The notes: generated from the sequence alone by a model not told the origin. Shown: positions 9,524 to 52,288, numbered from the stretch's first letter. The stretch is DNA of 64,000 nucleotides from Monocercomonoides exilis PA203 (GCA_001643675.2 LSRY02000042.1:682001-746000), one strand, 5' to 3'. A program made the numbers and translations.

Positions 9524-10334
9524 TCAAACATTCACAAAATAGTATGAAACATTACATGCCATTCTATGTTCATAATTCATACAAAGAAAATACAGCATTC
9601 TCTTAAAGCAAAAGATGGTGTCTTCATATCCCTCTTCTTCCATCTTTTCATATATATTCCTTTTTGTTATTTTTCTTTTCGCTTCTTTCCTTTCATCATC
9701 CTCTTTTTTCAAACGATTTGAAATATTGTAGATGAATTCCAAGCTTTTAATTGTTATTCTGTCATTCATTGTTGATTTGTGAATCTCCTCCAGAAAAACA
9801 TCAACAGCCCCACTCCTCAACAAATCATCAACTGTCACACTTCTATTTCTTGCTGCTTCTTCAAGCACATTAATGCATTCTCCACTTATTTCTCTGTGAT
9901 TATCCTTTGCTATTCGAAATACCTGAACAAGGCTGTTAATTAGATCAGCAAAGTCTTCATTCCACAATTTGCAATGGCGAAAATAAACTAACAATGTTTC
10001 AATCCATTTCATTAAAAGAAGCTCTTCTTTCGTTTCTTTTCCTCCTTTCCATCCTTCTTTTCTCTTCCCATCAACACATTTCGAGAGTTCTTCCAGTTCT
10101 CTTCTTGCTTCTCTCGCAAAATGCAGCTCATTCACAATAATTTCTTCTAAACTGTTTTCAAAGATTATTCTTTTTATTAAAAACATCCAAGCTGATTGAT
10201 AGGCAATTCGTGTCAGATTGTGATGTTCCTGATGATATTCGATGATCTCCTTGATTTCATCAAGGAAAAGTTCTTTGTCCAGTTTCTTATAAAAAATAAA
10301 TAAATAAAATAAAATAAAGTGAAGAAAAAAATCG

Positions 10335-10401
<67 letters not shown>

Positions 10402-11047
10402 AGAGAGAGAGAGAGAGGAGGTAGGATATTAGTATCACAATTGGAAAAGAAGTTTTCATACGCAATATCCAGCTCCGCTTAATGCAAGCAAAGCCACTTC
10501 CACTTCTGTTTGGGCCTCTTTGTTTTCCTCTTTGTTTGATGAAGACTTCAAAAGGCAAGGAACGCAAATTGAAAGCGAGTTTAGTGGGAAACAAAAGTTA
10601 AGCAAAATGAAGCACTCAAAAAGGTCAACAAGAAGCTTCTCGTTCTTCTCTTCTTTTTTCAGTTCTTCTTCAATAATCATTTTCTTAAATCTTTGATTCA
10701 ATGAAGATCCACGAAAACTGTAATCATGTACATTTTTCAGTACATTCCAACATCCTATGCTCTTCAGCAACACAAACGCATTTTCCAAACATATTTCCTT
10801 TTCTTCAATCATTTTGTCCATTTTGTCGAACAATTCTTTTGTGAAAATTAAATTGGAATCTTTTTCGTTCATTTCAATAATCATTTCATTAATCTCTTCG
10901 ATTGTCCGTTTCTGCTTGTCAGCTGAGTTGCTGCTCAACCGGGAAAATAATTCTTCAAAAAACAAAGAAAGAAGTCCAATCAAAAAGAATTCAATGAAAC
11001 AGTGAATGCACACCAGTGAATTTTTTTGTGCTATCGATATTCTGCAT
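9524..11047 (-). CDS. Expanded helical/ARM-like family member, copy 4 (intact, 3 exons)
   Basis: Exons 11047-11014 (MQNIDSTKKFT), 10952-10462 and 10285-9524. Intron 2 contains (CT)n and a ~65-nt poly-T, which explains the poly-Phe in the ORF track. All family motifs are present. Confidence 0.85.
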
Positions 11048-15559: not shown

Positions 15560-16993
15560 ATGACTTTTGCAGAAAGGTTTTCGGGTTTGCTCTTATTGGA
15601 CTTTTTTATTTCTTTGTTGAAATAGAACAAAATAATCTTTTTTGCATTGAAAAAATCTGATGGTCGTCAATTGAACAAAGAAATGTTTTCGCAATTGAAA
15701 AATTGTTCAGCGGAAGAGCAAATGCATGTGATTGAAGAAATGATCGTATTGACTGAAAAAGCGGAAGTTGAAAGAGAAGAACCAATTTTGACAGATGAAT
15801 TTTTCAAAGAAATGGACAAGATGGTGGAAGAAAATACTATGCCAATGGAAAATGCGCTATTGTTGCTGAAGCACATGGGGTATTATAAAATGCTGACAGA
15901 ATTATGTTGTAATGGATTTTGCTATTCTTTTCTTCAGAAAAGAGTTGAGAGAATGATTGATGAAGAAGAGAAGAAAAAAGAGGAGAAGAATGAACAGCTG
16001 CTGATTGATCTTTGCGAAAGCTATCTTTTGCTTTTTGACATTATCATTTCTGAAAAAATGATTATATTGTGCGTGCCCTTTCTTCTGAAAGTTGTGTTGA
16101 AGAAAGAGGAAAACGAGGAGACTCAAAAAGAAGTTGAAATGGCTTTGTTGGCACTGAGCAACATCAGCAAATTTAATGTGTGAACACTTCTGCTTCCTTT
16201 TTCATGCAATCGTTTGTTTCTTAATTTTTTTGATAAGAAAATGGAAAAAGACTTGTATTTGAACGAGATTACGGAAATCATCGAATATCATCAGGAGCAT
16301 TGCCATCTGACGCATCTGGCTTATCAGTCAGCTTGGAGGTTTTTGGTTTGCAGGTTCCTGGATGAAAAAGGATTGGAAGATCTTATTGTGAATGAGCTTC
16401 ATTTTGCGGGAGAGGCAGCAAGAGAGCTGGAAGAACAGGCAAAAATTGTGGATTGGAAGAAAAAGAAAATGGCGAAAGAAGAATGGTTCATTTTCAACGG
16501 ATGGATTGATTCTGTGTCTGATTATTGTTTCTTTCAGTTGGAGGGGAAAATAGATTCTGCTGCATTGGTTGAATGTTTGTGTCGAATCCACAGACTGGCA
16601 CAAGCAAATTACAGTGAAATAAGCATCAAGTGCATCAGAGATTTTCATTCAATGCTTTTCAAAAACGTTGCAAGTGTGGATGAATTGGTGAAAGGCGGAG
16701 CTATTGATGCTGCTTTGGAGGCTGCATTTCAGCCAACAGCTGGATATTACTCAATGGAAATGAACATCAAATTCTTTCGTCTCTTTTCGTCTGGGCCGAG
16801 CACACAACCGGATGGGAACGAACATTGGAGCACAGGCGAAATGAAGGTGAACAAAAGAAGGCTATTTGAAAAACTGGAAGAGGAAGGATATGAAGACTTT
16901 ATTGTCAGCTGCAATTACATGCTTCTTCAGCTCAATGACAGCTATGGAGAGTATTTTTCAAGAAATCCTTCTGATTATTGTGTGGCTTGCTGA
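15560..16993 (+). CDS. Expanded helical/ARM-like family member, copy 6 (intact, 3 exons)
   Basis: Exons 15560-15584 (MTFAERFS), 15681-16177 and 16238-16993, with frame-preserving GT-AG introns. Motifs LLIDLCESY, ETQKEVEMALLALS, YHQEHCHLTHLAYQSAW, EKLEEEGYED. Confidence 0.85.
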
Positions 16994-18119: not shown

Positions 18120-21100
18120 ATGAAAGACGACATCAAATCGAGGAGTTCAATTTCAAGCGGAATGTCAATTGGCTATTCCCAATCTGAAGGACTGAACAAA
18201 CTCGAAACAATTCTGTTCTCCATTTTTTCGCCACTTTACGATCAGCCAAAACACACAAGCAGGAAATGGGAAATATTCGTTTGGACAGTGACAATGCTCC
18301 AGATGATGACGATCAGCCTTTTTCGAATTGACATTCCTGCACAATCAGTGAACCATTTTTCTTATGTATGAATTTTTTTTTCAAATAATTAGAAAAAATT
18401 AATTTTTTGAAAAATATTTATTATGCTATTTTTTTTTTATTTGCTCCTTTGGATGGCTTGTTTTTTTTGAATTTTTGAATGAAAATGTTTCAGTATATGT
18501 GCTTTCTGGACGGGACATCGATTGGGTTAGTAGCAGGAAAAATGAATTCGTATGTGATTATGGGATGTTCAGGATATCTGATCTTGCTTGATTCGTATCT
18601 GCTGGTTGTGGCTGCTTTTCAGGGCGTTATTGCTGGGACGCAGCCGTGGGTAATATCGTTTTTGCGATGGATAACACATTTGACATTTACCATTTTATTT
18701 ATTCCGTTTATTTCTTTGTGTATCACTGGTTTTGATTGTTATCACTCGGGAAAGCAAATGCTTCATCGAGGATATGAGGGTGTTTGTCTGGGTGATTTGC
18801 TTTCGATTTTGGGGTTTTGTTTTGGAATAGTCACAGTTTTTTATTTGTTGTTGATGTGTTTCATGGTGAACAATATGATTTTCAATAACAATCAGAAATA
18901 TGGAGGATTGATGTCGTCGTCGAGCGGGCTATGGAAGGGAGTGGATTCGTGCATTGTTTTTGGGTGTGTGTTTGCGATGAGGATGCTGTATGGGTGGCCG
19001 TTCTGGCGAGGAGCTGTGACGATTGGCTCGTCTCTGGCGATGGCCGTGTATTTTGTGTGTGTCCAGCCGATATACAAGCTGGAGGGGAATCTGCTCATGG
19101 GCGCGAAATGGTGCATGTTTGGGTGCTTGAGGCTGTTTGGTGAAGTTGGATATGCAGTTGAAAGGGCAACACGCAACTGGATTGGCACAGTTGTGTTTCA
19201 AGCGGTTGGGTTGATTGGTGGAATTGTTGTGTGCGCAGTGGTGTTGCCTACGATAGGCCGAAAAACGAGAGAGAAAAAGTATCTTTTGTTGGCTTTTGGG
19301 AGTCAGGTTTCTGAGACTAGCAGCGATAATCCGTCTTTACCTTTGACTTTGCCTTCGCTGAAAAGGCCCGAAAGAATCGAGTCATCGCTGCGATTTGTGC
19401 AAAAGGAGGAGTATCAGACGATGGCGCATCTGACGTTTGCAGATTATGTGTACACACAGGGGCTGAAGACGAACAAGAGCAGCAGCATGCTGTGCTTCCA
19501 GTATGCGTCGTTTCTGTCGGCATATCGGAAAAACCACATGAAAGCGAGCATGCTCATTCGGAAGGCGCGGACGCTGTCTCCGAGTCTGTTTCTGAGCTTT
19601 GTGCTGTTCTGCAAGGCGAAGGAGAACGGCGGGAGAGCGGGCGGAGAGAACAGCCAGAACGGAGCCAGCGAACTGAATTCGTTTGCCTTCACTTCTCTTT
19701 TGGCAAAAGCGGAAAAGCACCACGAGATGGCTGTGAGTGCGATGAAGGACTTTTTCGAGAACGTGACGGCAATCCAGCCAGACTACAAGTCGATTCCAGT
19801 TCATCTGAATTTGATTGTGAAGAATGAAGAAATTGCCCGAAAGAGCTATGAGGAGCTGATATCATCTCACGGGCAGAACACAGCGGTGCTGCGGAGCTAT
19901 GCACGCCTGCTGCTGGACATCTACAACGACGAGGACGAGGCAGAGATGATTTTGAACAGAGCGGATCGGATTGAGGAGGAGTCTACTTCCGTCAGCGAGA
20001 CGACAATGACACAGACACACACAGCAGCCACAACATCGACTGACACGCTTCCAGATTTCCCGCTGGGTGCAGTTGATACAGAATACATGGGCAGCAAGAA
20101 AAGCGAGAGAAGCAAGAAAACAGGAGCTGAAGGTGAGGCCAACACCGAATGTGAATCTCATTCTGTTCGTGTTGCGATGCACAGGAGATTTGAGGTGCAG
20201 ACTGGGAGAGGAGACGAAAGAACAAGCACACAAAGAGGGTTGGAAGGCAAATTGGGAGCAAGCCAATCATTGTCTGAAATGGCGAATTTGGAGAGAAGCG
20301 AGGCGCAACTGCAGAAAGCGCTGAATGACACAGAAAAGAACAAAAGAGAGAGCGAAAGGAAGAGGAAGAGTGAGAGGAAGAAGAAGAAGAAGAAGAAGAA
20401 GAGGAAAGACATGATGATTATTGATCTGATGATGGGAGGGCGCAACAAGAGCATGAGTGGAGGCGCCGGGCTGGGGATAATGAAGTGTGCGGTGGTGTCT
20501 CTGCATCTGGTGGGGATAGCAGCGCTGGCGGTGGGGCTGGTTGTGTATGTGGTGATGTCGAATGCGTATCAGAACAACCTGGACACGCTGCGGAATGTGT
20601 GCGACTTGTCGTACCACACAGCGCGGTCGGCGGCAATCGGGTACAACTTCTTTGTGTACGACGTGAAGTACAAGTTTGCGAATCAGACGGTTGTGGATGA
20701 GTGGATGACGACGATGGTGCGCAAGGCGCAGCTGCTGGAGATGCTGCGGGAGACATCGGAGAGCCTGGCGTCGATGCTGGGGAGGGTGCATGAGACGACG
20801 TCGAACATGGATCCGTGGGAGACGGCAGACGTGGACACGTATGTGTTCATATTCACAACGAAGAACGAGACGCAGGCAGACGGGAGCACAGAGGAGGTGG
20901 TGGACACGAAAAAGCAGATCCTCCACCCGACGTCGATGATCGACATCCTGTCGACGCTGTCGCAGATGATCCACCACCTCTCGATTTCAGACATGGCCGC
21001 CCGCCCGGAGTATCCAGACTATCTGCCGAGCATGCAGTATTTGGTGTTCAACTGCCCTGTGCCGATCTTGGACGGGGCGAAACGGGTGATCATGTCGTAT

Positions 21101-24037
21101 TTCGAGCTGATGAACACAGACTGCGACAAGATCGTTGCAGTATTTGTGCTGATCATCGTGCTGTTCCTGGGTCCTCTGACAGCTGGGCAGCTAGTGATGT
21201 TTGTGAAGGTGACGAAGACAGCAGTGGAGAACAGGGAAAGAGCGCTGCATGCGATGCTGGATGTTCCGAAGAACAAGATGCAGAGTGTGATCCGGCGGCT
21301 GCTGAGGGCCGACGATGTTGATTCGGAGGATTGTTTTTCTGTGACAGCGTTGCTTCGGGAGAACGAGGACTCGAAACGTTCAGAAAGCTGTGGGAGCAAC
21401 CGAGACGAGCAGTGGGAGGAGGCTGGGTCGCTGCTTTTGGAGGAAGGGAAGGACGAGAGCATGCAGTGTTCGCATCGAAAGAGAAGCAAGCAGTGTTCTG
21501 TTCAGCCTCTCCATCTGGCTGAGGAGAAGCTTACAGACAGCAGCAGCAGCAGTGCAAGTTCATTGCCTGGAGTGCAGATGATGAATACATCACAGCAGCA
21601 GAAGGAGAAATGTCTGCCTGTGTTGAGCTTATCTGAAGGAGAGCTTGGAGTGACTGGATCGTCACCTTCGATGCTTCCTGGGGCAGAACCAATGGATGAG
21701 TCCAACATAGACACCTCGCCTTCGTATTCTTCTTCGAAATCGCTTTTTGGAGAGCAGACTTCGACAGCACTGACTTTTGGTGCATCGCATTTTGTGTCTC
21801 CGAGAATGGGCGAAGAGAGTGCGAAAGGCACACAGAAATATGAACCTCATTTTGAATCTCCAAAATCACCCAGATCGATGCCATCAGATATTATGCATTC
21901 TTTGAGCAAGTCGAAAAGTGGGTGTGATGGGGCAACAGGGGAGCTTCCTTCATATCTGTCGAGAAACGATGCTCTGCTTGTGGAGCATCAGAATTTCAAG
22001 ACAAGTGTCAATGGAAATGTTGGCCAGGAGATGGGATTTGAGAAGAGCGCAGAAGAAGAAGGCATTCTCACAGCTGACATCAAAAAGCTGACAAGCATTG
22101 GAAGTGCATTGAAGTCTCAGCCGGTGCCTTTGTTTGATGGTCGTGGATATTCACTGCTTCCGATGCGCAAGCAGCATATGAACACAAACAGCCAGGGAGT
22201 TGATCTGACCAGCGATGCACAGTCGATTCAGTTTCTTCCTGCTCTTTCGACTGGAAGCAGGTATTCAAATGGCTGTGGTATTGGAAGCACCAATGTTGAT
22301 GGGAATGGAAGTCAGTTTCATTCCGCTGCGTCTGCAAACGGGTTGTTCTCCACTCAATCTTCGAGCATGGAATATGAAAACAGCCCTGCTTTCAGCACGA
22401 TGCAGCTGTTGTCTCCGGCAGCATCGCCTGTTCTGTTCCGTCAGAGCCAAATGTCTTCGAATGAGCAAAGTGGGCTGCTTCCAGAAACAGTGCCTTTGGC
22501 TCCAGCTCAGCCAGTGATAGTGGCTTATTCAAAAGCAGAACATGTTCATCGGAGCAGCAACGAGCATCTTGCTCAGAAAGCGCAAGTTCAGCTCAAAGGA
22601 ATGTCAGAAGCTAAATACAGTTTGGATGAGGAAGACACTGAAGAAGCAGAGAAGAGCAGGCAGATGGGACTGATAAGAAATGCCGTTGAGGATGCAGCTT
22701 GGGAAGAAGGAATGGAAAAGGAGATGGAAAAACTGGAAGCAGCATACAAGCAGCTGCCGAGTCCTGTCACACCAACGATTCTTGTCACCACAGTTCTTTC
22801 AGCAGTGCTTGGTGTTGTGACAATTGGAACAACGATTGCGTTGGTGTGCATTTTTGTGAACAGTTTCAAACCTACCTCTGCGAACATCATCCTGTCTGGG
22901 ATGCGTGCATCGATATTGTTCCAGATCCAGTATCTGCTGCTGACTGTGCTTCAGCCGCTGGCTCTGCTGAAGACAGACCAGTCCGTCACGTTTGCCACAT
23001 CGCACAATCCCATTTTGAACAGCTCTTCGCACTGCTCAGGCTCACCGGCTGTTTCCCGCGACTTGCTTGTTCCGATGTCGCGCTATTTCGAAGCGGTGCA
23101 TCTGGGCTGCCATTTTGGCGATTCGAAGTATTCGCACTCGGGAGACTACACATACGACTCGGTGTCTGTGAAGCGGATGAACACTGCCATCAACCGTGAT
23201 ATGCTTCTGAAGGAGGCGAAGTGCTATCTAGCTGACTCTGACGACTGCTCGGAGGCTGACCCCTTTCGGATGTACGGGGTGAAAGGAACGATATACGGGC
23301 TGACGACGCTGCTGGCGCGGCTGAGAGTGAATCTGGAGAGGATCTCGAAGATGGATGTTGAGGATGTGAATGTGATGAATGCTGATGCGCGCTTTGCTCT
23401 GACAGCGCTGAGGAGCGACATTGTGGCTGGGATGAACAAGATGACGAACATGATTCTGGCGACAGGGAAGGAGGAGGTGCAGGAGTCGATAACGATCCTG
23501 ACGGTTGCTGTGGTGTGCTTCTGTGTGCTGTATTTTGTGTCGATGTTTGGCAACGGGATGAGGTGGATCGGAGAGATTGGGTTTGTGGAGAATGTGTCGA
23601 GCAAGCTGTTTGAGCTGCTGCCGACTAGAGAAGGCGAGAAAGAGGTTGAGTTTCTGCAATCGATGGCGACAGGGCAGGGCTCGTTTGACAGAGGAAGAGA
23701 GGCTGTTATGGATGCGGTGCAGCAGCTGCTTGTGTGTGTGAAGCAGAACGAGCATTTTGAGCTGGTGACTTCGGCGTTTTACCAGCTGACGTCGACTGTG
23801 GAGAAGGTGTTTGGGGAGGAGGAAAAGGAGATGGCTGAGAGGAGCTATGTTGGGGCAGAGAAGCATCAGAAGGAGCACACACTGATCAGACAGAGGCTGA
23901 CGCTGATTGGAGACCAGCTGCGCTCAAAGAACGAGGTGGCGAAAGCAGTCGGGAGGAGAAAGCTTTCTTCGCTGTTTGACATCCACTTCAGTGACGAGGA
24001 CATCACGTTTGCTGAGGCTGCATTTGGGCTGAATTAG
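18120..24037 (+). CDS. ~1930-aa multi-pass membrane protein, TmcB/TmcC (tiny macrocysts)-like, with C-terminal hemerythrin-like domain
   Basis: Exons 18120-18365 and 18494-24037. An N-terminal bundle of hydrophobic helices is followed by a TPR-like region (YEELISSHGQNTAVLRSYARLLLDIYNDEDEAEMILNRADRIE) typical of TmcB-like proteins, then two TM-ectodomain-TM modules separated by a Ser-rich disordered linker. The last ~125 aa follow the hemerythrin pattern (TG..FD, F.EEE..M....Y....HxxxH, HxxxxD). Confidence 0.85.
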
Positions 24038-25361: not shown

Positions 25362-26794
25362 TCAAACATTTACAAAATAGTCTGAAATGTTCAACGAGAA
25401 ATCAAAACCAAATACATCGTCAAGATCACACAATCTTTTATAAAAGCTTGCAACGATATCTTCATATCCTTCCTCTTCCTTCTTGTCGAACATCATTCTT
25501 TTCAACTTCATCCATTCTTCATAATCATTCCTTCCCATTCCATTTCCCTCAATATCTTTCAAAATTTTGAAAAGAAATTCAAGAAATGAGATGCCATGTA
25601 GTTTTTGAACGAATAGTTGTTAATTTCCTCCAAAAAGAAATCAACTGCTCCGCATTTCAGTAAATCATAAACAACAGGAAAAATTGATTGGTCATTCACC
25701 AAACCCTCAAAATAAATGCAACACCTAAAGACAATTTCTTTGTGTGCATCTCTTGCTTCTCTGCATATTCTGATTATGCAACCAAATAAACCAACAAACT
25801 CTTCATCATGAGACTTGCAGCACAAAAGGAAACAGAAAATATCGTCCAGCCATCTTTCAATCATCACGATATATTTCCTTTCTTCTTCTTCAATTTCCTC
25901 TTCTTTTCTCTTCCAATCAACACATTCTCTCAGCTCTTCCAGTTCTCTTGCTGCTTCTCTCGCGCAATGCACCTCACTGGCAATAACTCTTTCCAAGTTA
26001 TTATCATATATCACCCGATACATCAAAAACTTCCAAACAGACTGATATGCGAGTCTTGTCAAATTGTGATGCTCCTGATGATGTTCAATGATCTCCTTGA
26101 TCTCATTCAGATACAATTCTTTATCCAATTTCTTATCAAAAAACAAGAAAAAAAGTTAAAAAATATCAAAATGAGAAAAATGCTCTCAAACATGATATCC
26201 AGCATTGCCCAAGGCAAGAAGAGCTATTTCCACTTCTGTTTAAGCTTCCTCCTTTTCCTCTTTGTTCAAAGCAACTTTCAGAAGGCAAGAAACACATATT
26301 TTCATCGTGTCATCGCTGATAGCACAACCTTTTTTGTGCAAGAATAAATAGCATTCGCAAATATCAGCCAGCAGTTTTTCATCCTTTTTATCTTTTTTCT
26401 GATCTTCTTTAATTATCATCTTTTCAAACATTTTGCACAACGAAGATCGTTCAAAAGTCGAAATCCGAGCATCTTTCATAATTTTCCAATATCCCAGGGA
26501 TTTCATCAACAATATTGAATTTTCCAATGAAAATTTCTTTTCTTCAATCATTTTGTTTATTTGATTGAAGAATTTAATGGTAAGTGCGGATCTAAATTGC
26601 GCTTCATTCATCTTGTCAATTAACTCATTTATTTCCTCAATTTTCTGTTTCTGTTCATCGTTTGAACAATCTCCCAGTCCATTCAGCAATTCTTCAACAA
26701 AAGCAAAGAAATGAAAGAAATCCAATCAATAAAAATTCATATGCAACTTCAACAGCGCACCATTGAATTTTTTCGTGTTGTTCGTATCCTGTAT
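25362..26794 (-). pseudogene. Expanded helical/ARM-like family member, copy 7 (pseudogene)
   Basis: The start codon position reads ATA (ATA CAG GAT ACG AAC AAC ACG AAA AAA TTC), with a TAA/frameshift at ~26240 and a frameshift at ~25560. Family motifs and exon layout are retained. Confidence 0.8.
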
Positions 26795-28320: not shown

Positions 28321-30177
28321 TTAAATATTGCGCTCATTTCTTCCTTCAGCTCTGTGCTGGTGCCTTGAGCGAATGTCAGACGGTGGAAGTTCAAATGCTG
28401 CTTCAGTCAGACCATTAAATGCACTCGTCTTGAATTCGAGGATGCTTCGAGGCGAAGCCAATTTGTTTTTCGAAGGCAGGCAGCCAGAGCACAGCCAGAA
28501 CGGCTGCAAGCCACTCTTTTGTGGAGTAGCTTCGATGCGGTCACGCAGCCCTGTTTCTTCGAGCTCGTCTTCAATCAGCCTGAGGAGGCGGACAGCCCCA
28601 TCATCCGCTCCTTTCATCAGCTCTTCCTCGTCTTCTGAAAAGTCTGCCTTTTTCAGCGAGGGCAACTGCTTCGTCGTGGGGAAATTCAAATAAAGTGAAT
28701 ACATCCCATCGTAGCACATGCTCATCTCCAGCAAGGAAAGAGTTTTAAACTGCTCATATTGCGGGCCAGGCATCCCATATGCAAAATTCCTTCTGTTATT
28801 TCTGCCTTCACTGTTGTCCCTGTTGTGCACTTCCACATTGCGATTGTAGACAGAAGCATTTTTCACCCTCATCTCCCTTGCAATGCGCATGAACATGATG
28901 CACGTCTCTCGGATGATCTGCACCGCATAATACGCTACACGCCCTTTCACATCCCTCCCAGCTGCCAGCCACTCAAACAGAACATGCACAAACCCCATGG
29001 CAAATGCAAAGGGCAGCTCCTTCTCCACATTCGTCATCGTCTGCAGCACAAACGCATCAATCGAGATCTGAACAGACTCCAGCGACTGCAGCTGATACGC
29101 CCTGCACTCAATCTGCTGCACAGTGATGGGGGCAACGAGAGGAAAAGGATGCGCCATCTTGTCGACCAGCCTCTTATAAAACGGACGGATTGCAAGCTCA
29201 TCGCAGCTGTTGCTTTGGATGCAGAAGGCAGCTGCAATGCAGCTGAGGGAATGGTTGAAGCGGAGTGCTGCTGAAGAATAGTGGTACAGCGGAACAGTCA
29301 GATGCGATCTCTTCTCAGCTTTCAGCGTGGGGGTAAAGGGGTTCATCTGATCAAACATGGCATCTTCCTCGTCTTCTTCTCCTTCTCCGTTCGCAACTCC
29401 ATTGAAGTTCCGATTTCTTTGGATTTCGATGTTTCTGCGGCTGAATTCACGAGTAGTTGCAGCCAAGCTCTTTCTGACCTCCAATTTGTGTGCTTTCCAG
29501 CTGCTCTTGCAGTCAAACTCGAACTCAACTGGAGAACTGTATTTTTCCAAAGAGGGCTTGCAAATGTGGTGGAACGGGTAATAATAGCTGATGTCGTTGT
29601 CAAATTGGAATGTCTTTGATGTTATGGACTCAACCTGTTTTGTGCTAACAATCATCGTTTCTTCTTCTTCTCCTCCTTCGTATCCATCAGTTCTATTCTT
29701 CTTCTTATTATTCTTATTCATTTTGCTTCTTTGTTGAATTGCTTCCCTCATTTCTTCCTCCACTTCGTCCAAAGACTCCATCAGCTGCTTCTCAAACAAT
29801 GGGAAGAACAATCGTTTCATCTGCTTTTGGCAGATTATGCAGATGTTTTCAATGCAATGGCTCGACAAGCAGAAGAAGAGCTCGTCTGGAAAACTGATTG
29901 GTTGGTTGTAAATGTGAAGGGAAACACAAAAAGATTGAATAAAATAAAAAAATATGAAAAATTGAATAAGAATAATATTAAAAATTATAATTTTAAATTA
30001 TACGCAAAAAGAAAGGAAAAAAAGAGATAGAAACAGAAATAGAAAATTTAAATGGCAAACTTATTCAGCCGAAGCAGCATCTCAACAAGAATTTTCAATT
30101 GTCGATCAGACAAAAATTCAACATTTTCTGAATAAGTTGACATCGTTGCCTTTCCTATGATTATTAAAAGAGAATAA

Positions 30178-30231
<54 letters not shown>

Positions 30232-31739
30232 CAAATTTTTTTATTTTGTGCAAAAGAATTTGAGCAAAAACTGCATACGATTTTGTCCAAACAATGCATC
30301 AATGCACAGAATGCAGCGTCTGACTTGCCAAATATCAAACTTGTCAGCCATCATCTCTGCAACATAATCTTCGTCAACTTCAACTTTTGCCTCTTCTGCC
30401 TCTTCTGCCTCTTCTCTTTCTTCTCTTTCTTCTCTTTCTTCTCTTTCTTTCCCTCCTTTCCACAGCTGATTTTTCCTCCTCAAATATTCCTCTTCAGCAT
30501 CCTTCGGAATCATAATCCCTGCAATAAGCACACGCACAATGCTTTTGATCGGATTAATTCTCCGAAAAACACACCTCGCTCCTGTCGAATAAAGCGCAAG
30601 AACAGCTTTGATACGCACTTCCATCGGAAGAAATGGCTTTTTCGCTTTTTTCTGCATTTTTTCTATCGTTTTTGCTGACGAACTGGCTGATGCTGAAGAC
30701 TGGCAATATTCTGTCTCTTCCATTTGTTTTCGTTTGCTTCCTTCACTTTGCTCAGCAGGATTCTTCTTTTCAGTTTCTTCTTTTCCCTCCTCTTTTATTT
30801 CTTCTTCTTCTTCTTCTTCTTTTTCTTCTTTTTCAGAGTCGTCAATCTCTTCTGCATCATTTACTTCGCACTGCACATTAATCCCGCTTTCTTCTACTGC
30901 TGCTCGAAGGCTCAGCTTCGTCCGTGCAATTCCTCTTTTCTTGTTTCCCATCGCAATTTCAGCCAAAACTGCCTCAAAATAATGCGCATCGTATTCAATC
31001 AGAAAGTACTCATACGACTTCTTCGACACGCACCTTCTTCTGTTGTACATCAGCTGCAGCACTGCCATCGCATCACTCAAACCGCAGCTACTTTGGGAAC
31101 GCACCAGAATCGAGTCCACCCCATCCAGCACACTAAGCCTCTCCAGCGCTTCCATCCCGCTCATGTCAGCCATCTTCACAATCTGAAGAAATGCTCTCGC
31201 AGCAACGCACATCACAGCCTCGCTCTCTGTTGCACAGACACGCTCCACCAGTGCCCCAACCATGCTCCCCTCCAAAATTGCTCGTTGAAGAATTGAAGTT
31301 GAAAGAAATGAAGATAAAAGTTGCACCTTCGTATTTGGTCTTTCCTGATCAAAATGATTGCGCATCCACCGCCTTTCGAAGCCTGTTAATAAAATTTCAT
31401 TCTTCCTCAGCTTGGTGAATGGTGCAGAATAGGATTTTGCATCAATGATTTGGATAATCGCCTTGACAAATGAAACCACTATCTCCTCGTTATCAACTAC
31501 CTTTAAAACTTTTACGCATTCCTCAAAAGCATGCTTTATAAAGTTGGGAGACAGTGTTTCCATTTTCCCAGCATGTTGCGATAGAATTTCGTGGATTTGC
31601 TTGGAAGCATTGCGATATTCCTCAATTCTGAACTTTTGAGATCTGAAAGCATGTAAAATAATTTAGTATTCAAATTACCGTAGAGATACTGTGAATTTTC
31701 TGGTGAGTCTTCAGGTGTCTGAACTACAAAAATTTCCAT
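28321..31739 (-). CDS. ~1000-aa hypothetical protein, probably helical (ARM/HEAT-like) with acidic insertions, 4 exons
   Basis: The model 31739-31690, 31642-30279, 30154-30061, 29893-28321 joins the 440-aa and 515-aa ORFs in frame through GT-AG introns. Amphipathic helices; C-terminal IEDELEETGLRDRIE motif. First exon tentative. Confidence 0.7.
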
Positions 31740-38370: not shown

Positions 38371-40656
38371 ATGGAAAATGCATTTGAATTGGAACATCAA
38401 AATCAAATTGTCTGAAAATTTATCCTTTTTTTATTATCAAATTTTCTGTCAACAATAAAAATTTAAATTTTTTTAGGAAAAATCCGCTCAACATGTAACT
38501 ATCTCGGCCCCCCCAAAAAATAATTTAATCAGACCAACTGCAAAACGTCCTCGCTCTCAATCACCTCGACAGCGATTTGCACAAAACGAAAATTCATTGT
38601 CAAAAGAAATGAACAGTCAAATTTCGTTGGAAAGTTCAAAAGTTGAGCAGGCGGTAGGCTATATACCTTCATCTCACCCTGCTGTTAGAGATCATATTCC
38701 ACACTCCAAAACACCACCTCCATCTTTTAAAGAAAATCAAATTGCTGGAGAAAAGAAAGATAGACCTGCATTTCATCTTCAAATACAAAAGACAGCACAA
38801 TTTTCAACAAATCCCACATCACTTTATCCTCCTTCGTTTCTTCTTCCCAGTCTCATTCACAGAGGACACCAAACAGCAGCCTTTAGCAGAAAACGTTTGG
38901 ACGGAACCGAAAAAGCTGAGCTGTTAGATTTTTCTCTTAGTAGTCGTCCACTGACAGCAAGAACTTACGGAACGACTCCACTTCTTCCATCCTCAACTGC
39001 AATCAACAAGCAGCAAACATTTACGATATCCACATCATCGATGGCAGCACCTTCAATAAACAGCCAACCTTCTTCTTCGAATGCGCCTTTGCTCCCACCG
39101 CGCTCCTCCGATAGCAAAACACACGCGCTTTCCAGAAAGCGTCTGGAAACAGCAGCCAAGCGTGGCACTTCGAGTGAACGGTGCAAGCTGCCGAGTGTGG
39201 GAGATGCAGAAGGCGCGAACGAAGGAGCAGGCGAGAGAGAGTGGAGAAGAGAAGGGAGGGGGGACATGGGCAGAAGGGCAGAGAGCGAAGACAGGCGAGA
39301 GCAAGAAGGGGAACAAGAAGGCGATGGACTGATGCTGACTCCCAGAGGAAGAGAAGAAAACAGAGGAGATAGCAGAGGAAGAAAAGGGATAGAGAAAGAA
39401 AAGGAGAAAGAGAAAGAGAGTGGGAAGGAAAGAGAAGAGTGTGCTGACTCAAAAGGAAGAAGCACAGAGAAGCAGAGGCAGGCAGTGCACGAGGCAAGAG
39501 CTGCTGTTGGAATGCGCTCCCATTCATTCAATGGGACACGCCCATCTCGTTCTGTCTCTCCACTCTTCCTCTCTGGCTCTCCTTCTTCTTCTTTCTCTTC
39601 TTCCTTTTCTTCTTCTTCTTCTTCTTCTCCTTCTCCTTCTTCTACAGTCCCTGTTATCAACACCCTCAATGCAGCATTCACCTCTCAGCCTGCCTCTTCC
39701 TCTGTCTCTCCTATTTCCATCCCTTCCATCTCTTTCCCTCACTTCTCACCCGACGGCTCAGACACTTACATGCCTTCTGCTGCACTCCTCTCTTCTTTGG
39801 CCAATGGAAATAACACATCATCATCTTCTTCCTCTTCCTCTTCTTCTTTTTCATCTTCCACCACAACCACCAATCTCGCACCTTATCCCGTTCCTCCATC
39901 AACCACTGCCTCTTTGTCTTCTTTTCAGCCTGAATATACTTCTGACCCATCAAACTCTTCTTCTTCTTCTTCCTCTTCTTCTTCTCCTGTTCGCAATAAC
40001 ACCCTTTCCTCTCCTCTCTCTCCTCGCTCTTATCCTTCTTCTCCACGCTCCCCTCGTTCTCTCTCCCCTGCCTCTTTTCCTGCCCCTTCCTCTCCTCGTC
40101 TCAATCCATCATCATCTTCCTCTTCCTCCTCTTCTTCCTCTTCTCCTTCTCCTTCTTCCTCATTATTCCCTTCCTCTTCTTCCTCTTCTTCCTCCTCCAC
40201 CTCCACCTCCCTCACAGCCAAGCCCCAGTCTCCCTTCCAACCTTCTCTCTCTGCTTTCTCTCAGCAGGCAGATCACTTCCTCTTCCCTCCGATGCATCCT
40301 TCTCCTCTGTCTCATCTTCCTCTCCAGCAGAACGACCTCTTCCTCCGCCCACACACTCAAACACGCTCTGCTAATGCATCTAATAAGAATTCACGTGCTT
40401 CTTCGGCTTCTTCTCATTCTTCTTCAAATGATAATTCTTCTTCCTCTTCTTCTTCATCTGAAGTGAAATTTTCTTCATTTGCTCTTCCTTCATCATCATC
40501 ATCATCATCTTCTTCTTCTTCTTCAGATGCTGTCGATGTTCTTCCTCAGCATCACAGCAATTTATCTGCTCCTCTTCTTTCTTCTTCTTCTTCTTCCTCC
40601 TCCTCTTCTTCAAATAGCTCAAATGCATCTTCAATCACATCACCTCATTCGCCTAA

Positions 40657-40690
<34 letters not shown>

Positions 40691-41840
40691 CCCTCTCCCT
40701 CTTCCTCTTCAATGGAGTTATCAGAAATACAACAATCATCATCATCATCATCATCTTCTTCTTCTTTGTATTATTCCTCGCCCAATTGGAAAGTGTCTAC
40801 ACCACTTCGCTCTTCTCTTCAGAACATTCTGCAACAAGATAACTCAACCAATTCTTCTTCTTCTTCTTCTTCTTCTTCTTCTTCCAATCTGTTTCAATCT
40901 CAATCACAACAACCTCTTTCTCTTGATCCATTTGATGTTCCTTCCTCCTCCTCCTCCTCTTCTTCTTCTCTTTATCCTTCTTCTTTCAACAATCCTTCCT
41001 CTTCTCCTTCTTCCTCTCCCTCTCCATTGGATGTGGCTGAGTCAACAGTGTCTGCAGCGCAATCAATGGGAATAGACATGACAAACCTGGAGAATGCGAT
41101 CAGAGGATGGAGAAGACCTACACTGGTGGCAATGAAGAGGAAGAAGACAAGAAAAGAAGGAAAAGAAGAGAAAGAAGAGAAAGAAGGGAGAATGGGGAAG
41201 AGGAGGATGAGGAGGATGATGAAGAGGAAGAGGAAGGAGGAGAGGAGGAGGAGTGTGTGTGTGGGTGGAGGGGTGAATGAAGAAAAGGGAGAAGAAGGAG
41301 AAGGAGAAGATGATGATGAGATGGATGAAGAAGAAGACGAAGAAGAAGGTTTTACTGAAGACGATGAAGATGCGTTTGATACACTTGAGGCAGTGAATGA
41401 AAGAGAATGGAGAGAAAGAGGAAGAGGAAGAGGCAGAGGCAGAAGCAGAGCAGAAGCAGAAGTGCCTCTTTCTCCACCTTATGTTCCGCCTGTGTCGCCA
41501 AGCAAGACTCCCTTTGCTGATCCCGACAGAGGGATACAGGGAGTGACTATGACATTGTTCCCATTCAAAGGTGTGGTTATTATTGTGATATATAATTATT
41601 AATATTATTGTTTATATATCTTGTATTTATTTTTGCATATCATTTTTATGTGTTATTATTCAATCTTCTATTTATTTAATTATTTAATTATTTATTTATT
41701 TATTTATCTATCTATTAATAAATGAATCAAACAGAGTCAGTGAAGGATAATCCGATGAATATTGTTCTGCCTCCACCACCGAAGACAGAGACAGTGCGAA
41801 GGCTGATGACACAGGAAGGGAGAAGAGAAGAGAGGGAGAG

Positions 41841-41877
<37 letters not shown>

Positions 41878-44800
41878 GAGAAAGAGAGAGAAAGAGAGAA
41901 GGAACAAGAGATTGCGAGGTTGAAGGCGCTGGGGTTGTGGAGAGAGAAAGAGAAAGAGAAAGAGAAGGAGAAGGAGAAAGAGAGAAATCGAGAGAGAGAT
42001 AGAGATAGAGACAACAATCAGTATGGAGAATGGAGAGAAGGAGGATATTCAGATGAAGAAGATGGAGAAGGAGGAGGAGGAGAAGAAGGAGGAGGGGTGA
42101 TGATGATGAATGATGGGACTGTTAATAGTACAGTTAATAGCAACATGAGTGGGATGACAATGGGAAGCAGAGGAAGAAGCAGACAAGCAACGTCAAAGAC
42201 AGACAAAAGAAGAAGAAGCAATTCGAGCAGAAGAGGAGGAAGTGGAGAGGGAGAAGGGAAAAGAGATGGAGAAGATGGAGGAGAAGGAGGAGAAGGAGAA
42301 GGAAATAGAGAGAATGAGAAAGGGATGATGAAGAAGAAGGAGAAGAAGAAGTCGAGGAAGAAGAAGAAGAGGATGATGACAGATGAAAACAGAGCGATTT
42401 TGGGGTTGTTTGGAGTGGATGCGATGGACGATGAAGGGAAAGATGATTCAGATGAGAGTGAGAGCGATGGAGACACAGAAAGTGACAGCGGCTATGAGTC
42501 ATACAATGCATACAACAGAAGAAATAGAGAAGAGGAGGAAGAGGACGATGAGGAGGAAGAAGAAGATGATGAAGAGGGAGGAGAAGGAGGAGAAGGAGGA
42601 GGAGGAGGAGAGAGAAGGAGGAAAGGAGGAGCGAAGAAGGCGAAGAGGAGGAAGATAGTGCAGTTTTCTAAGCTTGGGCCTCGTTTTGGGCAGAGTGAGA
42701 AGAAGCTGGAGAACACATTGAAGAGCGAGATAGAGAGGACGAAGGAGATGGAGGAGGAGAGGAAGAAAGAAGAGCAGAGAGAGAAAGAAGAGGAAAGGCA
42801 GAGGAAGTTGGCTATTCAGGAGCAGCTGAAGGCGAAAGTGCAGAATTTTGATGTGGTGATGGCGAGGTTTGCAGAAGAGACAGGGAAAAGCGAGAAGCAA
42901 ATCCATTCTGTTCTGAAGGGAGCATTTCGAACAGGGCTGTTGGATGGACAGTATATTGCGCCTCCTCTTCCGCACAGGCAGAGGAAAAGGCTGTTTGACA
43001 AGAAAGGAGTCACCCCCACGCCGTCCATTGTGTTTGGGTGTTTTGAGACAGACGAATACATCTCACCAGCAGCCTTTGCAGAGTGGCAGGAGATGCTGGG
43101 GATGAAGAACATTCTCTATGCTCAGTATCTGTATTGGGTGATGGTGGTGGCTGGGAAGGAGCTGATGACACGGAATGAGCAGCCAAAGGTAGGTGCAGTG
43201 AAGAACGGGATCGACTGGCACACGGCGCCGATTCCGCTGTGTGAAGTGATGGAGGCAGCAGAAGCGAATGAGAGGAGGGCGAAGAGGAAAGAGGAGAAGA
43301 GGAGGAAGGAAATGGCGATGGGAATGGGAATGAATAAAGTGGAGGATTTCTATGTAGATGCGCCAGAGAAGAAGGAAGGAGGAGAAGGAAGAGGAGAAGG
43401 GAAAGGGAAAAATGGGATGGATTCAGAGTCAGATGAAGAAAGCGAAGAAGATCAGCAGAATGGAAGTGGAGGAGGAGCAAATGAAGACAATCAGAACAGT
43501 TCAGTGGAAGGAGCATTGGCGAGGTGCTTTGTGTTTGGTGGGCAAGTGAACCAGCTGAACTTTCTGTCGCCTCAGATTGGAGAAGAGGAAGGGGGTGGAT
43601 ATGAGAGAAGACGATGGAGTGGCACTTCTGTTGGGAATGTGCCGTTGACTCCCACAACACCACTGACACCCACCACACCCACTGCTTCTGCATTCCCTTT
43701 GTCATCATCATCATCTTCTTCTTCTTCATCTTCCTCTTCTTCTCCAAGGCAACAGCAGATTGCTCGGCAGAAGCAGCGGAAGAAGGAGCAGCGGAGGGCG
43801 AACAGGCTGAGAATAGAACAAGATTATTCGTGTCCCATCGATGCCTCCTCGTTCTACATGACTCTTCGCTCTCTGCTGGCTGTCATTGGCAGTCTGAGCG
43901 TCATCACTAAGGCTTCTGCCTCTGCTGCTGCCTCAGCCTCTCCATTCAGCTTCTCTTCTCTTATCTCTCTTTCTTCATCATCATCATCATCTTCTTCTTC
44001 TTCTAAATCTTCTAATTCTTCTTCCAATTCATCATCATCTTCTTCTTCCTCTTTGCCAGATGCTAATTTCGTACCCTCTCACGAGCTTCGTCTCTATCTT
44101 GTGTCTCGCTATCTGTTCCGCCTGTTTGATTGGGACCAGGACTCGTTCATCAGTGGGAATGATCTGTACAACGTGATCTCTTCGCTGCACAGTGGCATTG
44201 AAGAAGAAGATTTGATCGCTCTGCTTCAGATGGTGTTTGCAGAGTGTGACGAAGATGGCGATGGGAAGCTGTCTTTTTGGGAGTTCTGCCGAAGAGGAAG
44301 AGGACCTCACCATCGGCTGCTGGCATTTGTGATGGATGTGTTTGCAGCGATGGGGGGAGAAGAAGAAGGGGAAGGAAGAGAAGAACAAGAAGGGAATGAG
44401 AATGAGAATGGGAAGGGTGAAGGGAAGAGTGGAAGTGCAGAAAAGAATGCGAGAAAGGATGGAGAAGCAGGAAGTGATGGGGCTAATGGAGAACAAAACC
44501 AGGATGAGAAAGGGAGGGATTTGGCGACACCTCCTCCGCTGGTTGATGTGAATGGCTCTCAAACAACAGCATCATCAGCAGCAACAACAACAGGAAAAGA
44601 TAACAATTTATCCTCTTCCTCTTCTTCTGCTCCTTCTTCCTCTCTTTCTTCTCTCCCTCGTCCTTCCACCCCTTTCCACTTCGATCCGAACTCCGATGCC
44701 TTCTATGGAAGGTGGCGTCTGCGCGATCCAGAGCAATGCGACCCGCTCACCTTCCGAAAGCGCTCGGGGACACACGGAATCTCTCTTGTGCTGAGTGAGA

Positions 44801-45951
44801 ACAGGAGGACAGGGACAGATGTGGTGCTATCTCTTCTGTTTGACCGGCAGATGTGGAGTGAGAGGGATGCGTCGGCGTGGTGGTACTCAAACAGCCACCG
44901 GTTTGTGAGGGAGTGGCACAGCGGGATGTGGAAGGAGAGGGGCATCAATCCGAAGAAGACGATTCCTGCGCCTTATCGAATGCCAGCCTCAGAGCAAAAA
45001 GGGAAGATTGAAGTGGCTGTGCCTGATACGATTGAGAGGAGGCTGAAGGAGAAAGAGGAGGACAGGAAGAAGGAGAAGGAGAGGGTGCAGAAGGAGAAGG
45101 AAGACCAGGAGAAGCTGGCGAAGGCGAATGAGAAGCTGTTGGAGAAGATGAAAGCGCATCCGAACAAGAAGCTGGCAGGGACGAGTACATTGGCTGGAAA
45201 GGAATCTCCTTCGAAGCACCGGCTCATTTGCGAGGTGGCTGTTTCTTCGACTTCTTCCACGACGACACTCACCACGCCCAGCCAGCTGACAAGCAGAAGC
45301 AACATGTCAAAGCCCAAAACGAGACCCCGGCCGATCATTGTGCCGACAACTGGGTCGTCGAATGCATCGTCCTTTTATCGCCAGCCTCCACTCACAGCAA
45401 AGGAAACTAGAACAGCTGGAAGAGGAAGGATAACAGCTTCTTCTTCTTCAAATTCTTCATCTTCTATTTCTTCGAATTCTTCATCTTCTTCTTCTTCATC
45501 ATCACCTTCTTCTTCTTCTTCTCTTCTTCCCAGGCGCAGTTCATCTCAGCCTCGTTCCTCTGCCTTTCGTTCGGCTTCTCCGCCTTCTCTTTCTTCGTCT
45601 TCTGGTTCTGCCTCAAAACATCCATTGACTCCAACTGATGTTACTCATTCTGATTCATTGCTTTCTCCAAAGTCATCAACATCAACATCATCATCAACAA
45701 CTGCTGCTACAAATAATAATAATAATACAAACACATCTTCTTCTTCTTCTTCTTCTTCATCATCATCTTCTTCTTCAGTTAAAGTGAAACTTTCATCAAC
45801 CACTTCTTCTTCTTCTTCTTCTACTTCTTCTTTGTCTTCTGTGAATTCGTTGTCTTCCACTCTTTCAAGTAACAGTTCTTCTCTTCCGCCAAAGCCAAAG
45901 GCAAAAGTGAAACGGACAGTTGCTTTTTCATCCACCTTTACATCGCCATAG
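38371..45951 (+). CDS. Giant (~2400 aa) Ser/Glu-rich low-complexity protein with an EF-hand pair
   Basis: The 1001-aa and 1409-aa ORFs are joined in frame by intron 41571-41734. EF-hands FRLFDWDQDSFISGNDL and FAECDEDGDGKLSFWEF lie at ~44115-44290. The start and 5' exons are uncertain. Confidence 0.8.
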
Positions 45952-49900: not shown

Positions 49901-51935
49901 GAAGAGAAAGAAGAGAAAGAGCTAAAAGAGATTGAAGAACAAGAAAAACAAGCACAAAATGAAGAAGAAGAGGAAGGAGAAGAAGAAGGAGATGTGAAGT
50001 TTGATATATTTGAGTTTTCTTCGTGTTTGACCAACAATGAGATAGCGTGTATCAGTGTGTCTGGTGACTGGGATGATTACAAGACGAGCATTCCTCTCTC
50101 TTTGCACAAAAACAGATGGGTTTTGAGAAGCAGCGAGAACGAATTGAAAGAGAAAGAGAAGGAGGAGAAAGAAGAGAAAGAGAAGGAAATGAAGAAAGCA
50201 GAGGAAGAGAAGAAAGCAACAGAGAATGAAGAAGCAGGAGGAAAGAAGAAGAACAAAAGAAAGCAGAATAAGAAAGGGAAAAGGAAAGCAGAGCAGAATC
50301 AGAAGAAAGAAGAAGAGGAAGAAGAAGTGAAAGTTGAAGCAAAAGAAGGAGAAGAAGAAGAAGACAAAGCGAAGAAGGAAGCAAAAGCGAAAGAAGAAGG
50401 ATTCAATTTGCTTCAACTTGATGGGAAAAGAGTGAAGTTCAGATTTCTTGTGAATGAGGCATTGCAGATGACATCGACGAAATACGAGGAAGAGAAGAAC
50501 GAAGAAGGGGAAGAGTATAACATTGCAACAATACACTTTGAAGAGCTTATTCAGAAAGAGAGAGAGAAGAGAGAGGAGAGAGAAAGGGAGAAGAAGGAAA
50601 GAAGAGAGAGAAAGAAGGAACTGGAGAAGAAGAGAGAAGAGAGAGAAAGAAGGAAGAAGAAGAAGATGGAGGAGATTCAGAAGGAAAAAGAAGCAAAAGA
50701 AAAAAGAGAAGAGGAAGAGAGAAGAGAGAAAGAGAGAAAGGAGAAAGAAGAGAAGGAAAGGAAAGAGAAAGAGAAGAAAGAAAGAGAAGAGAAAGAGAGG
50801 AAAGAAAAGGAAGAAAAAGAAAGAGAAGAAAGAGAAGAAAGAGAGAGGAAGAAGAGAGAAGAAAAGGAGAAAAAAGAGCAAGAAGAGAAGAAGAGAAGAG
50901 AAGAAGCTCAACAAAAGAAAGAAAAGGAGAAGAAAGAAGCATCGCAGCCATCGAACTCTAAAGCAGCCAAAGGCAAAGAGAATGCAAATTCCAATATGAA
51001 TGTCACGAAAGGGAATGAAGGAGCAGCAGGAGAGCAGGAGAAGAGAGGGAAAGGGAAGGGCAAAAACAAAGGGAAGCAGAAGACAAATGCTAATGCAGAA
51101 GCTGCAGCTCAAAACAAACAGGAATCTGAAGCGAATAAACAGACACACGAGATAATTGAGGCAGCACCAGTTGTGCAGACGAAGAGGAAAGGGAAGAGGA
51201 AGATGATGATTGAAGACGATGATGAAGAAGAGATTGAGAAGAATGAGAGGAGCGAGAAGGAGAAAGAGACAGACGGTGAGTCTGTTTCGAGTGTGTCAGC
51301 TGAGCGAGAAGAGAGTCCATCGAAGGCGAATGGCGGAGAGAGCTCGGCTCATTCGTCGCCTGACAGGGCATCGCAGACAGGAGAGTCAGCAGAGCAGGCA
51401 GAGAGTGCTGGGCAGGGAGAGCACAGGAACAGCAACTTGGCGTCGTCTGCAAGTGCCACGGCGTCTGCGGCAGCGAGGTGGGTGTCGAATACTCTGTCAT
51501 TCTTCCGCCACAAGAGAAGAGAGACGAAGTGGGGCGGAAGGGTTGGGGAGATTAAGAGCAGATATGCACAGCACGTGAAGGAGGAGGAGGAAGAGGACGA
51601 GATGCAGAGGGAGGGAGATGGCAGTGAGGACGAGGAGGAAATCGAAAGTGCATCGAAAGCAGGGCAGCAGCAACAGAAGAAGAAGAAGAAGACGGCGAGT
51701 GATGCGAAGAGAGGGAGATGGGGGTGGGAGAGGAAGATGATTGCAGAGATAAGACGCATTGGGTTCTGTTTTGAGAGAGGGCTGGATGCACTTGTGATGA
51801 GCCATGCAGAAGAGCTGAGAGAGAATGAAAGCAGAAAACGTTCTGAGAGTGGCAGCGATTCAGACATGGATGGAAGCATGTCTGATGAAGATGGCATTTA
51901 CAGTGACAAGAAAATGTGTGTATTTATTTTATTGT

Positions 51936-51982
<47 letters not shown>

Positions 51983-52023
51983 TTAATTTATTTATTTATT
52001 TATTTATTTATTAATTTATTAAT

Positions 52024-52054
<31 letters not shown>

Positions 52055-52288
52055 TATCCACTTTTCATAATGTCACTTGCGAAATTTGATGTCATTACAG
52101 ATTGGAATTGCAGGAGAAGGTTTGTATAAATTTTCTTTTGAGAATATTTGTTTTAATATTTAATTTCGATTCTATTTTCATTGTTTTGTTTATTTTCTCA
52201 GTTTGCACCGTGCTACAAATACATATTTGATGACACTGATTCTGCAGTGGATTGCATCTCATACTTCTTTGATGTTCTGACATCCTAA
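46913..52288 (+). CDS. ~1700-aa Glu/Lys-rich protein with an interrupted AMPK-beta-type CBM48 domain
   Basis: Exons 46913-51915, 52101-52119 and 52202-52288 are in frame. CBM48 halves ISVSGDWDDYKTSIPL...RWVL and VKFRFLVNE...EEGEEYNIATI. The IYLF tail in the ORF track is an intronic (TTTA)n. Confidence 0.75.

Follow-up and report, generated by a model that had tools for sequence, protein, structure and literature searches.

A half-site hemerythrin domain at the end of oxymonad TmcB-like receptors has lost both histidines of one iron and probably holds a single metal

We analysed a window of 64,000 nucleotides from Monocercomonoides exilis PA203 (GCA_001643675.2 LSRY02000042.1:682001-746000) and found that the membrane receptor gene MONOS_3782, on the plus strand, ends in a half-site hemerythrin domain. 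Both histidine ligands of the O2-binding iron (Fe2) are replaced, and the three histidines of the other iron (Fe1) and the two bridging carboxylates are kept. Such half-site hemerythrin receptors form a large family in gut protists without mitochondria; they are real, family-wide and undescribed within the literature covered. Judging from the sequences, the domain probably does a job unlike that of any described hemerythrin and probably holds a single metal.

An earlier note on this DNA had singled out positions 23651-24034, the 3' end of a long plus-strand open reading frame (ORF, 18479-24037) whose product is 100 % identical to MONOS_3782 over the last 153 residues; residue numbers below are counted from this ORF. 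The seven ligand positions and their spacing are as the note gave them, and all codons are in frame. The two Fe2-histidine positions hold Arg1740 (23696-23698, equivalent to His25/His22) and Val1777 (23807-23809, equivalent to His54/His58). They are followed by Glu1781 (23819-23821), formerly a bridging carboxylate, by the Fe1 ligands His1796 and His1800 of an HxxxH motif (23864-23878, codons starting at 23864 and 23876) and His1836 (23984-23986), and by the other formerly bridging carboxylate, Asp1841 (23999-24001), with residue differences of 37-4-15-4-36-5.

The two histidines of an HxxxH (i/i+4) pair bind one and the same metal, and the textbook assignment of His25 and His54 to Fe2 agrees with ours. 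Canonical hemerythrins hold Fe1 by three histidines and Fe2 by two, bridge the irons by a glutamate and an aspartate, and bind O2 on Fe2 (PMC9388753); the C-terminal histidine of DcrH is an Fe1 ligand (PMC3947700). Because the last histidine binds Fe1 and the HxxxH pair shares one metal, the two missing histidines are those of Fe2. The claim that exactly the first two histidines are replaced, by Arg and Val, and that both belong to Fe2 agrees with these two papers and with the profile register given below. For a single event removing two of seven ligands, the chance of hitting exactly the two Fe2 histidines is 1/21; the decisive evidence for selective loss is conservation across the family, not the pattern in a single gene.

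By descent and by fold the domain (23630-24034, residues 1718-1852, 135 residues) is clearly a homologue within the hemerythrin/HHE superfamily. Curated models match it below their cut-offs: TIGR02481 with E 3e-11 and 43.3 bits (cut-off 51.75), NF033749 with E 4e-10 and 39.9 bits (cut-off 84), and Pfam PF01814, itself weak, with E 0.0045 and 17.9 bits (cut-off 25.3). A single-sequence query against PDB sequences gave no match and the family profile was required; built from 52 family domains, it finds no PDB entries other than hemerythrins (McHr E 6e-10, DcrH-Hr E 5e-8, myohemerythrin E 7e-5). When Methylococcus McHr is aligned by this profile, R1740 falls on His22 and V1777 on His58; the anchors are D(-3), a hydrophobic residue at +3 and F-x-x-E-E-x-x-M. 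The register is confirmed because three members have a histidine in the R column and one has it in the V column.

The hemerythrin fold that the earlier note had proposed to check for is found in the AlphaFold2 (AF2) model, a four-helix up-down bundle with a hemerythrin-type N-terminal loop and a mean predicted local distance difference test (pLDDT) of 95.6. Its best structural match is DcrH-Hr 2avk (template-modelling score 0.83, Z 17.3, root-mean-square deviation [rmsd] 2.4 over 131 aligned residues), with McHr at Z 16.2, invertebrate hemerythrin at Z 15.9 and unrelated bundles at 12.7 or less; Atlas matches are bacteriohemerythrin domains without exception. The domain is nonetheless probably not an O2-binding member of the superfamily, as its ligand set and pocket depart from theirs and its scores fall below the cut-offs. 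A phospho-histidine domain of the histidine phosphotransfer (HPt) type was considered and rejected: the conserved histidines form an inward HxxxH metal motif, and matches to the HPt fold are poor.

A profile search of 1.84 billion representatives and two homology searches yielded 53 domains of the family in full length and some 15 as fragments. Named carriers are oxymonads only, with more than 20 paralogs in M. exilis, 9 in Blattamonas nauphoetae and at least 4 in Streblomastix strix; the remaining sequences come from short contigs of metagenomes or sequencing runs. When the seven ligand columns are excluded, the 53 domains form one clade against 49 canonical hemerythrins (support 100/98), and their pairwise identity ranges from 20 % to 87 % (median 33 %). 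Not one of the 53 has the intact seven-ligand set. The first Fe2-histidine position is Arg in 50/53 and His in 3/53, and the second has lost its histidine in 52/53 (V22 Q9 T7 E4 I3 S3 A2 Y2 H1). Conservation of the other ligands is 52/53 for Glu1781 and His1836 and 53/53 for His1796, His1800 and Asp1841.

On a family tree with a total length of 32 substitutions per site, the five retained ligands show 0-1 changes, compared to 21 for the median column, and rank among the 12 slowest of 127 sites. Arg1740 is the 10th slowest, with a single change. The column of the second histidine changed 23 times, near the average, and since it is aliphatic in 27/53 members it cannot supply a ligand. The members with a histidine at either position are nested in the tree: the three with His at the first form one clade (99/92) and thus represent a reversion from Arg; the only one with His at the second (P0062, BLNAU_6807, Blattamonas) keeps Arg at the first.

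The tree counts and nested reversions argue for a single ancestral event rather than decay or many losses. The loss of the Fe2 histidines is, by these alignments, one event followed by long purifying selection on the new state, in which Arg1740 is a gained, constrained feature and the second position is free of constraint. As the one change in the Arg column restored His, within a nested clade, that column appears still to face the metal site. The proposal that the loss was selective is thus borne out, and the tabulation across homologs that the note had suggested shows that losses are not scattered; the strong constraint on Arg, the aromatic refilling of the O2 pocket and the one oxymonad-wide ancestral event had gone unremarked. 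Neutral decay of an unused domain, the two histidines going first by chance, would account for scores under the curated family cut-offs and for an M. exilis model (MONOS_12628) that ends within the domain. It is refuted by the site-rate analysis, and five ligands and an Arg nearly invariant over three genera at 20-35 % domain identity, in an expressed gene, leave it extremely improbable.

Several observations touch on this ligand history. The His revertants, P0033, P0039 (MONOS_2207) and P0020 (MONOS_4271), read W-D-x-N-H and still miss the second Fe2 histidine. Five non-family hemerythrins carry independent changes at one or both Fe2 histidines with the Fe1 set intact (P0120 R-H, P0148 N-Y, P0154 Y-A, P0126 N-H, P0108 H-N), and the sequences suggest that hemerythrins can repeatedly do without the Fe2 side, in oxymonads and beyond. 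The paralog models P0010 (MONOS_12628), P0014 (MONOS_15063) and P0018 (BLNAU_6765) end within or before the hemerythrin domain, which may reflect pseudogenes, frameshifts or errors of the gene models.

The bias of the search against intact relatives is small, two intact histidines costing 7 bits where family scores are mostly 50-300; 24 weak matches lie beyond those listed, and a far more diverged intact sister could have escaped the profile search. We found no TmcB fusion with an intact site: the long canonical-site matches are methyl-accepting chemotaxis proteins (MCP), GGDEF/EAL and SpoIIE proteins and tandem hemerythrins, all bacterial in architecture and with no TmcB tetratricopeptide repeats (TPR). 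A domain-length homology search for stand-alone relatives returned one fragment of the same family only. Pattern scans with close alignment gave no relative in 185,579 prokaryotic genomes and one canonical bacterial hemerythrin only in metagenomes; both are weak scans that do not show absence.

We consider it reasonably probable that the domain forms a mononuclear site of three histidines and two carboxylates in which Arg1740 stands in for the second iron. In an ancestor of the sampled oxymonads, a bacterial-type hemerythrin domain would have been fused to a multi-pass receptor of the TmcB family, at the cytoplasmic end, and its diiron centre would have become a single-metal site. One divalent metal, most plausibly Fe(II) by descent, with Mn, Zn, Ni and Co as possibilities, would be held by His1796, His1800, His1836, Glu1781 and Asp1841, the five conserved ligands making up exactly one coordination sphere. 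Arg1740 would take the place and the charge of the lost iron and pair with the carboxylate oxygens left free on Glu1781 and Asp1841, and the second Fe2 histidine would have been released from selection.

A comparable reduction is described for FlcD, which belongs to the heme-oxygenase-like diiron oxidases but is mononuclear and has the motif E-H-X-H-V-R; its Arg281 blocks the Fe2 site and forms a hydrogen bond with the Glu that once bridged the irons (PMC11363339). There too a diiron scaffold has gone mononuclear with Val and Arg at the second-iron positions and the Arg in the Fe2 site. FlcD is however a soluble enzyme of unrelated fold whose old bridging Glu no longer binds metal, and the likeness is one of analogy only.

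The constraint on Arg1740 also bears on whether the centre could still be dinuclear, a second metal resting on solvent and both carboxylates, helped in some paralogs by a polar residue (Q, E, T, S, H) at the former histidine positions. The second position is indeed polar in about 24/53 members, histidine was regained at the first position in three and at the second in one, and diiron hemerythrin-like proteins with altered ligands exist, such as Mka HLP (PMC6993866) and the P1B-5 ATPase domain (PMC9388753). In MONOS_3782 and its closest paralogs, however, Arg and Val would give a second metal no ligand, the fixed guanidinium would repel it, and the family alignment holds no replacement conserved His, Cys, Asp or Glu on the inner face. 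We regard a dinuclear centre as very unlikely.

The surroundings of His1836 have been remodelled as well (23972-23989; Leu1832, Phe1833, Phe1837). The Trp that stands four residues before the last histidine in 86 % of the canonical set is absent from the family, which has Leu, Ile or Val (here Leu1832). The equivalent of Leu98/Leu114 (Phe1833) is Phe or Tyr in 88 % of the family, and that of Ile102/Ile119 (Phe1837) is Phe in 53/53. The canonical hydrophobic O2 pocket (I, F, F/L, W, L, I) is therefore not found in the family, and the changed positions coincide with those of the solved O2-pocket and tunnel mutants L98Y, L114F/Y and I119H/E. In the single-metal reading the Phe residues would fill the old pocket and the two-electron binding of O2 as hydroperoxide would be gone. 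Hemerythrin-style O2 binding is unlikely, since that chemistry needs two irons and the domain would offer one iron and a Phe-packed pocket.

From the same single-metal premise, the site might instead be an open mononuclear iron. The cavity vacated by Fe2 and its histidines would then take up a small ligand from outside (O2, NO, nitrite, sulfide, a carboxylate or some other anion), with Arg1740 as an anion anchor, and the domain would work as a small oxidase or as a sensor of gases or anions. A cavity could arise from the loss of the second histidine and the conserved Trp, and the sixth position, that of the old bridging hydroxide, would be free. There are also precedents: the mononuclear site of FlcD binds substrate and forms {FeNO}7 (PMC11363339), canonical chimeric hemerythrins are O2 or redox sensors (PMC9388753), and Dictyostelium tmcB is slowly induced by hypoxia (PMC12750705). 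Yet the canonical ligand pocket is crowded by the invariant Phe at the Ile102/119 equivalent and the Phe/Tyr at the Leu98/114 equivalent, and the residue at the second position varies freely (V, Q, T, E, I, S, A, Y), unlike in a shaped ligand pocket. We hold an open site to be unlikely, and the redox or NO sensor that the earlier note had suggested is one option of several and ranks no higher than a role in metal occupancy or structural docking.

A second family-specific feature is the motif R-Q-R-L-T-x-x-x-D in helix C (23888-23914, residues 1804-1812), which is not conserved among 92 canonical hemerythrins. Conservation is 100 % for Q, 98 % for R1806, 88 % for R1804, 85 % for T and 98 % for D/E, and no site in the domain changes more slowly than Gln1805. 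Helical-wheel arithmetic places Q1805, T1808 and D1812 on the face opposite the histidine ligands, which suggests that this stripe is a candidate docking surface. Members with long insertions also keep this motif along with the Arg and the remodelled pocket; the insertions, between helices B and C, reach about 60 residues in P0019, P0044, P0045, P0055 and P0058, and all five ligands are retained in them.

That the strongest new conservation lies on a surface, with Q1805 its slowest site, is also what a metal-free pseudo-hemerythrin might show, an interaction module acting through the RQR stripe with the histidines, Glu, Asp and Arg as a buried network of hydrogen bonds and salt bridges. Arg could neutralise one carboxylate, and metal-free descendants of dimetal folds exist, PqqC among them (PMC11363339). 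One Arg, however, offsets only one of two buried carboxylates, and the full ligand set of one metal, three histidines and two carboxylates, has been kept over the 32 substitutions per site of the tree, a persistence that a domain lacking metal would hardly explain. We regard a metal-free domain as unlikely.

The carrier protein has the layout of a TmcB/TmcC-like receptor, with PF25474 above its gathering threshold and a multi-pass arrangement of transmembrane segments and ectodomains. A hydropathy scan places a putative N-terminal multi-pass membrane region at 18554-19246 (ORF residues about 26-256). The TmcB TPR repeats (PF25474, 19664-19987, residues 396-503) score E 6.9e-17 and 62 bits against a cut-off of 27. 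A first transmembrane-ectodomain-transmembrane module is predicted at 20489-21187 (residues about 671-903) from hydropathy and by analogy to the second, at 22769-23614. In the AF2 model of the last 422 residues (pLDDT 88), the first transmembrane helix of this second module leads into an extracellular four-helix bundle whose last helix passes through the second transmembrane segment into the cytoplasm as one long helix. At its end lies a juxtamembrane L-x-x-L-x-P motif (23606-23623, 91-98 % conserved in 44 members), followed by a short linker and the hemerythrin domain.

The second module has no Pfam match. Its ectodomain best matches the PilJ sensor domain 8wdf (Z 12.0, rmsd 2.4 over 128 residues), and the unit from membrane to membrane matches the histidine kinase QseE 9m08 (Z 10.1 over 156), both within the range common to helical bundles. 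Neighbours in ESM feature space are unnamed clusters of sequences from ciliates, chytrids and parabasalids, the nearest named family being PilJ (0.88). As a lead from the models, the module may thus be a sensor of PilJ/NarX-like type. The extracellular part (22769-23400) has conserved polar residues of its own (H1518, H1541, H1545, D1556, R1597, D1647) and a conserved Cys pair (C1582, C1590), which might bind a ligand or a metal. No PAS, cyclase or kinase domain was detected in MONOS_3782 or in six other full-length or long members scanned. One Blattamonas member (P0023, 3353 aa) has two TmcB TPRs and two C-terminal membrane modules and resembles a tandem duplication or a fused gene model.

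In such a receptor the metal-loaded bundle would show its helix C surface to a partner, which could be an effector, a further subunit or the TPR region of the receptor itself. One continuous helix would couple it to the PilJ-like extracellular module, and metal occupancy or oxidation state would gate signalling, in the simplest case as a reader of cytosolic labile metal. The most economical function, we infer from the sequences, would be a metal-dependent docking module, stabilised or switched by its metal. Several points weigh against a metal-reading receptor. The non-ligand core residues D1737, M1785, F1778 and E1782 are as conserved as the ligands, so conservation alone is no proof of metal. 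The R2 protein of class Ie ribonucleotide reductase is metal-free and keeps several ligand residues, as does PqqC, a metal-free member of a dimetal family (PMC11363339). The PilJ-like match is that of a helical bundle at just Z 12, and MONOS_3782 is without any catalytic output domain to carry a signal.

The gene is transcribed, as a spliced joint is present in RNA-library contigs, which hold no information on expression level. Contigs from 3 RNA runs of one study join 18365 to 18494 across a 128-nt GT..AG intron (18366-18493). The mechanical ORF start at 18479 falls inside this intron; translation therefore probably starts at the ATG at 18120, shared with the NCBI model. Exon 1 (18120-18365) is an open frame of 82 codons and exon 2 runs from 18494 to the TAG stop at 24037, for a whole gene of about 1929 aa. 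RNA contigs cover the R1740 and V1777 codons with zero differences, so the Arg and Val are not assembly errors.

The NCBI model of MONOS_3782 appears to remove about 82 codons at 18650-18896, where the alignment breaks before exon 2 residue ~138. One RNA contig is continuous over 18582-18983 with no gap, and the annotated intron, which deletes membrane helices, is probably spurious. An 81-nt joint at 22513-22595 was rejected as an intron: its borders are GT..TC, and the contig is probably that of a paralog.

Elsewhere in the window, mutually similar fragments with acidic helical repeats flank the receptor gene, at 15647-16993 (+), 25559-26146 (-) and 9524-10594 (-), and seem to be copies from a gene family that has expanded in M. 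exilis. A 1409-aa ORF at 41722-45951 (+) contains an EF-hand pair (Pfam E 3e-7), and a 997-aa ORF of strongly skewed low-complexity sequence at 56358-59351 (-) contains an AMPK-type glycogen-binding module (PF16561, E 1e-9). Other long ORFs have no Pfam match at E 0.001 (38597-41602 and 46913-52129 on the plus strand; 28321-29868, 30241-31563 and 53089-54114 on the minus strand), several with extreme GC/AT skew.

Among known systems, the family resembles DcrH, the Desulfovibrio vulgaris MCP with a C-terminal hemerythrin, and McHr (4xpx) in fold, ligand spacing and N-terminal loop, and MONOS_3782 shares with DcrH the layout of a membrane receptor whose cytoplasmic tail is a hemerythrin, in MONOS_3782 with a putative sensor module outside the cell. 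Unlike these proteins, the oxymonad family has lost both Fe2 histidines and the Trp, has Phe in place of Ile/Leu and carries the RQR motif; in MONOS_3782 the scaffold is a eukaryotic TmcB protein, which has neither an MCP or GGDEF domain nor any other catalytic output. With TmcB/TmcC (PF25474; Dictyostelium tiny macrocysts protein B) it has in common the TPR, the multi-pass N-terminus and the repeated transmembrane-ectodomain-transmembrane units. The oxymonad members differ in ending in a hemerythrin domain, of which we found no description in any TmcB protein, and in the full-length members scanned no PAS or cyclase was detected. In Dictyostelium, tmcB acts in cAMP-dependent macrocyst formation besides its slow induction under hypoxia (PMC12750705).

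Departures from the 5-His/Glu/Asp motif are likewise seen in mycobacterial HLP, the P1B-5 ATPase domain, RIC/YtfE and the eukaryotic iron sensors FBXL5 and BRUTUS. The characterised hemerythrin-like proteins with altered ligands are still diiron and belong to other HHE branches, and none is reported to lack the whole histidine set of one iron. A hemerythrin survey noted ligand variation in 106 bacterial single-domain sequences, uncharacterised, and left its meaning open (PMC4919030), and the M. exilis genome paper mentions hemerythrin only as an oxygen-stress gene acquired by lateral transfer (PMC6759080). The literature covered, subscription papers lying outside it, describes no TmcB-hemerythrin fusion and no mononuclear hemerythrin. 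In databases one Blattamonas member is labelled 'putative hemerythrin' and several JGI entries 'hemerythrin', which would wrongly imply O2 binding.

Hemerythrins are defined by their diiron centre, and in the literature we found no characterised variant that departs from two irons. A single-metal form conserved throughout a lineage, if true, would be a new cofactor type for the hemerythrin fold and a natural test of the reduction of a dimetal site to one metal, with Arg as a charge stand-in convergent with FlcD. Tentatively, the domain may be the first natural mononuclear hemerythrin, its one remaining iron read out through the conserved helix C surface, and the receptor family may sense NO, labile iron or some other small ligand at the membrane. 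At 135 residues, soluble and well predicted, it offers a handle on TmcB receptors, which are widespread in protists and biochemically unexplored. Oxymonads are amitochondriate and lack heme synthesis (PMC10703272), and the family bears on how such organisms sense iron, redox state or gases.

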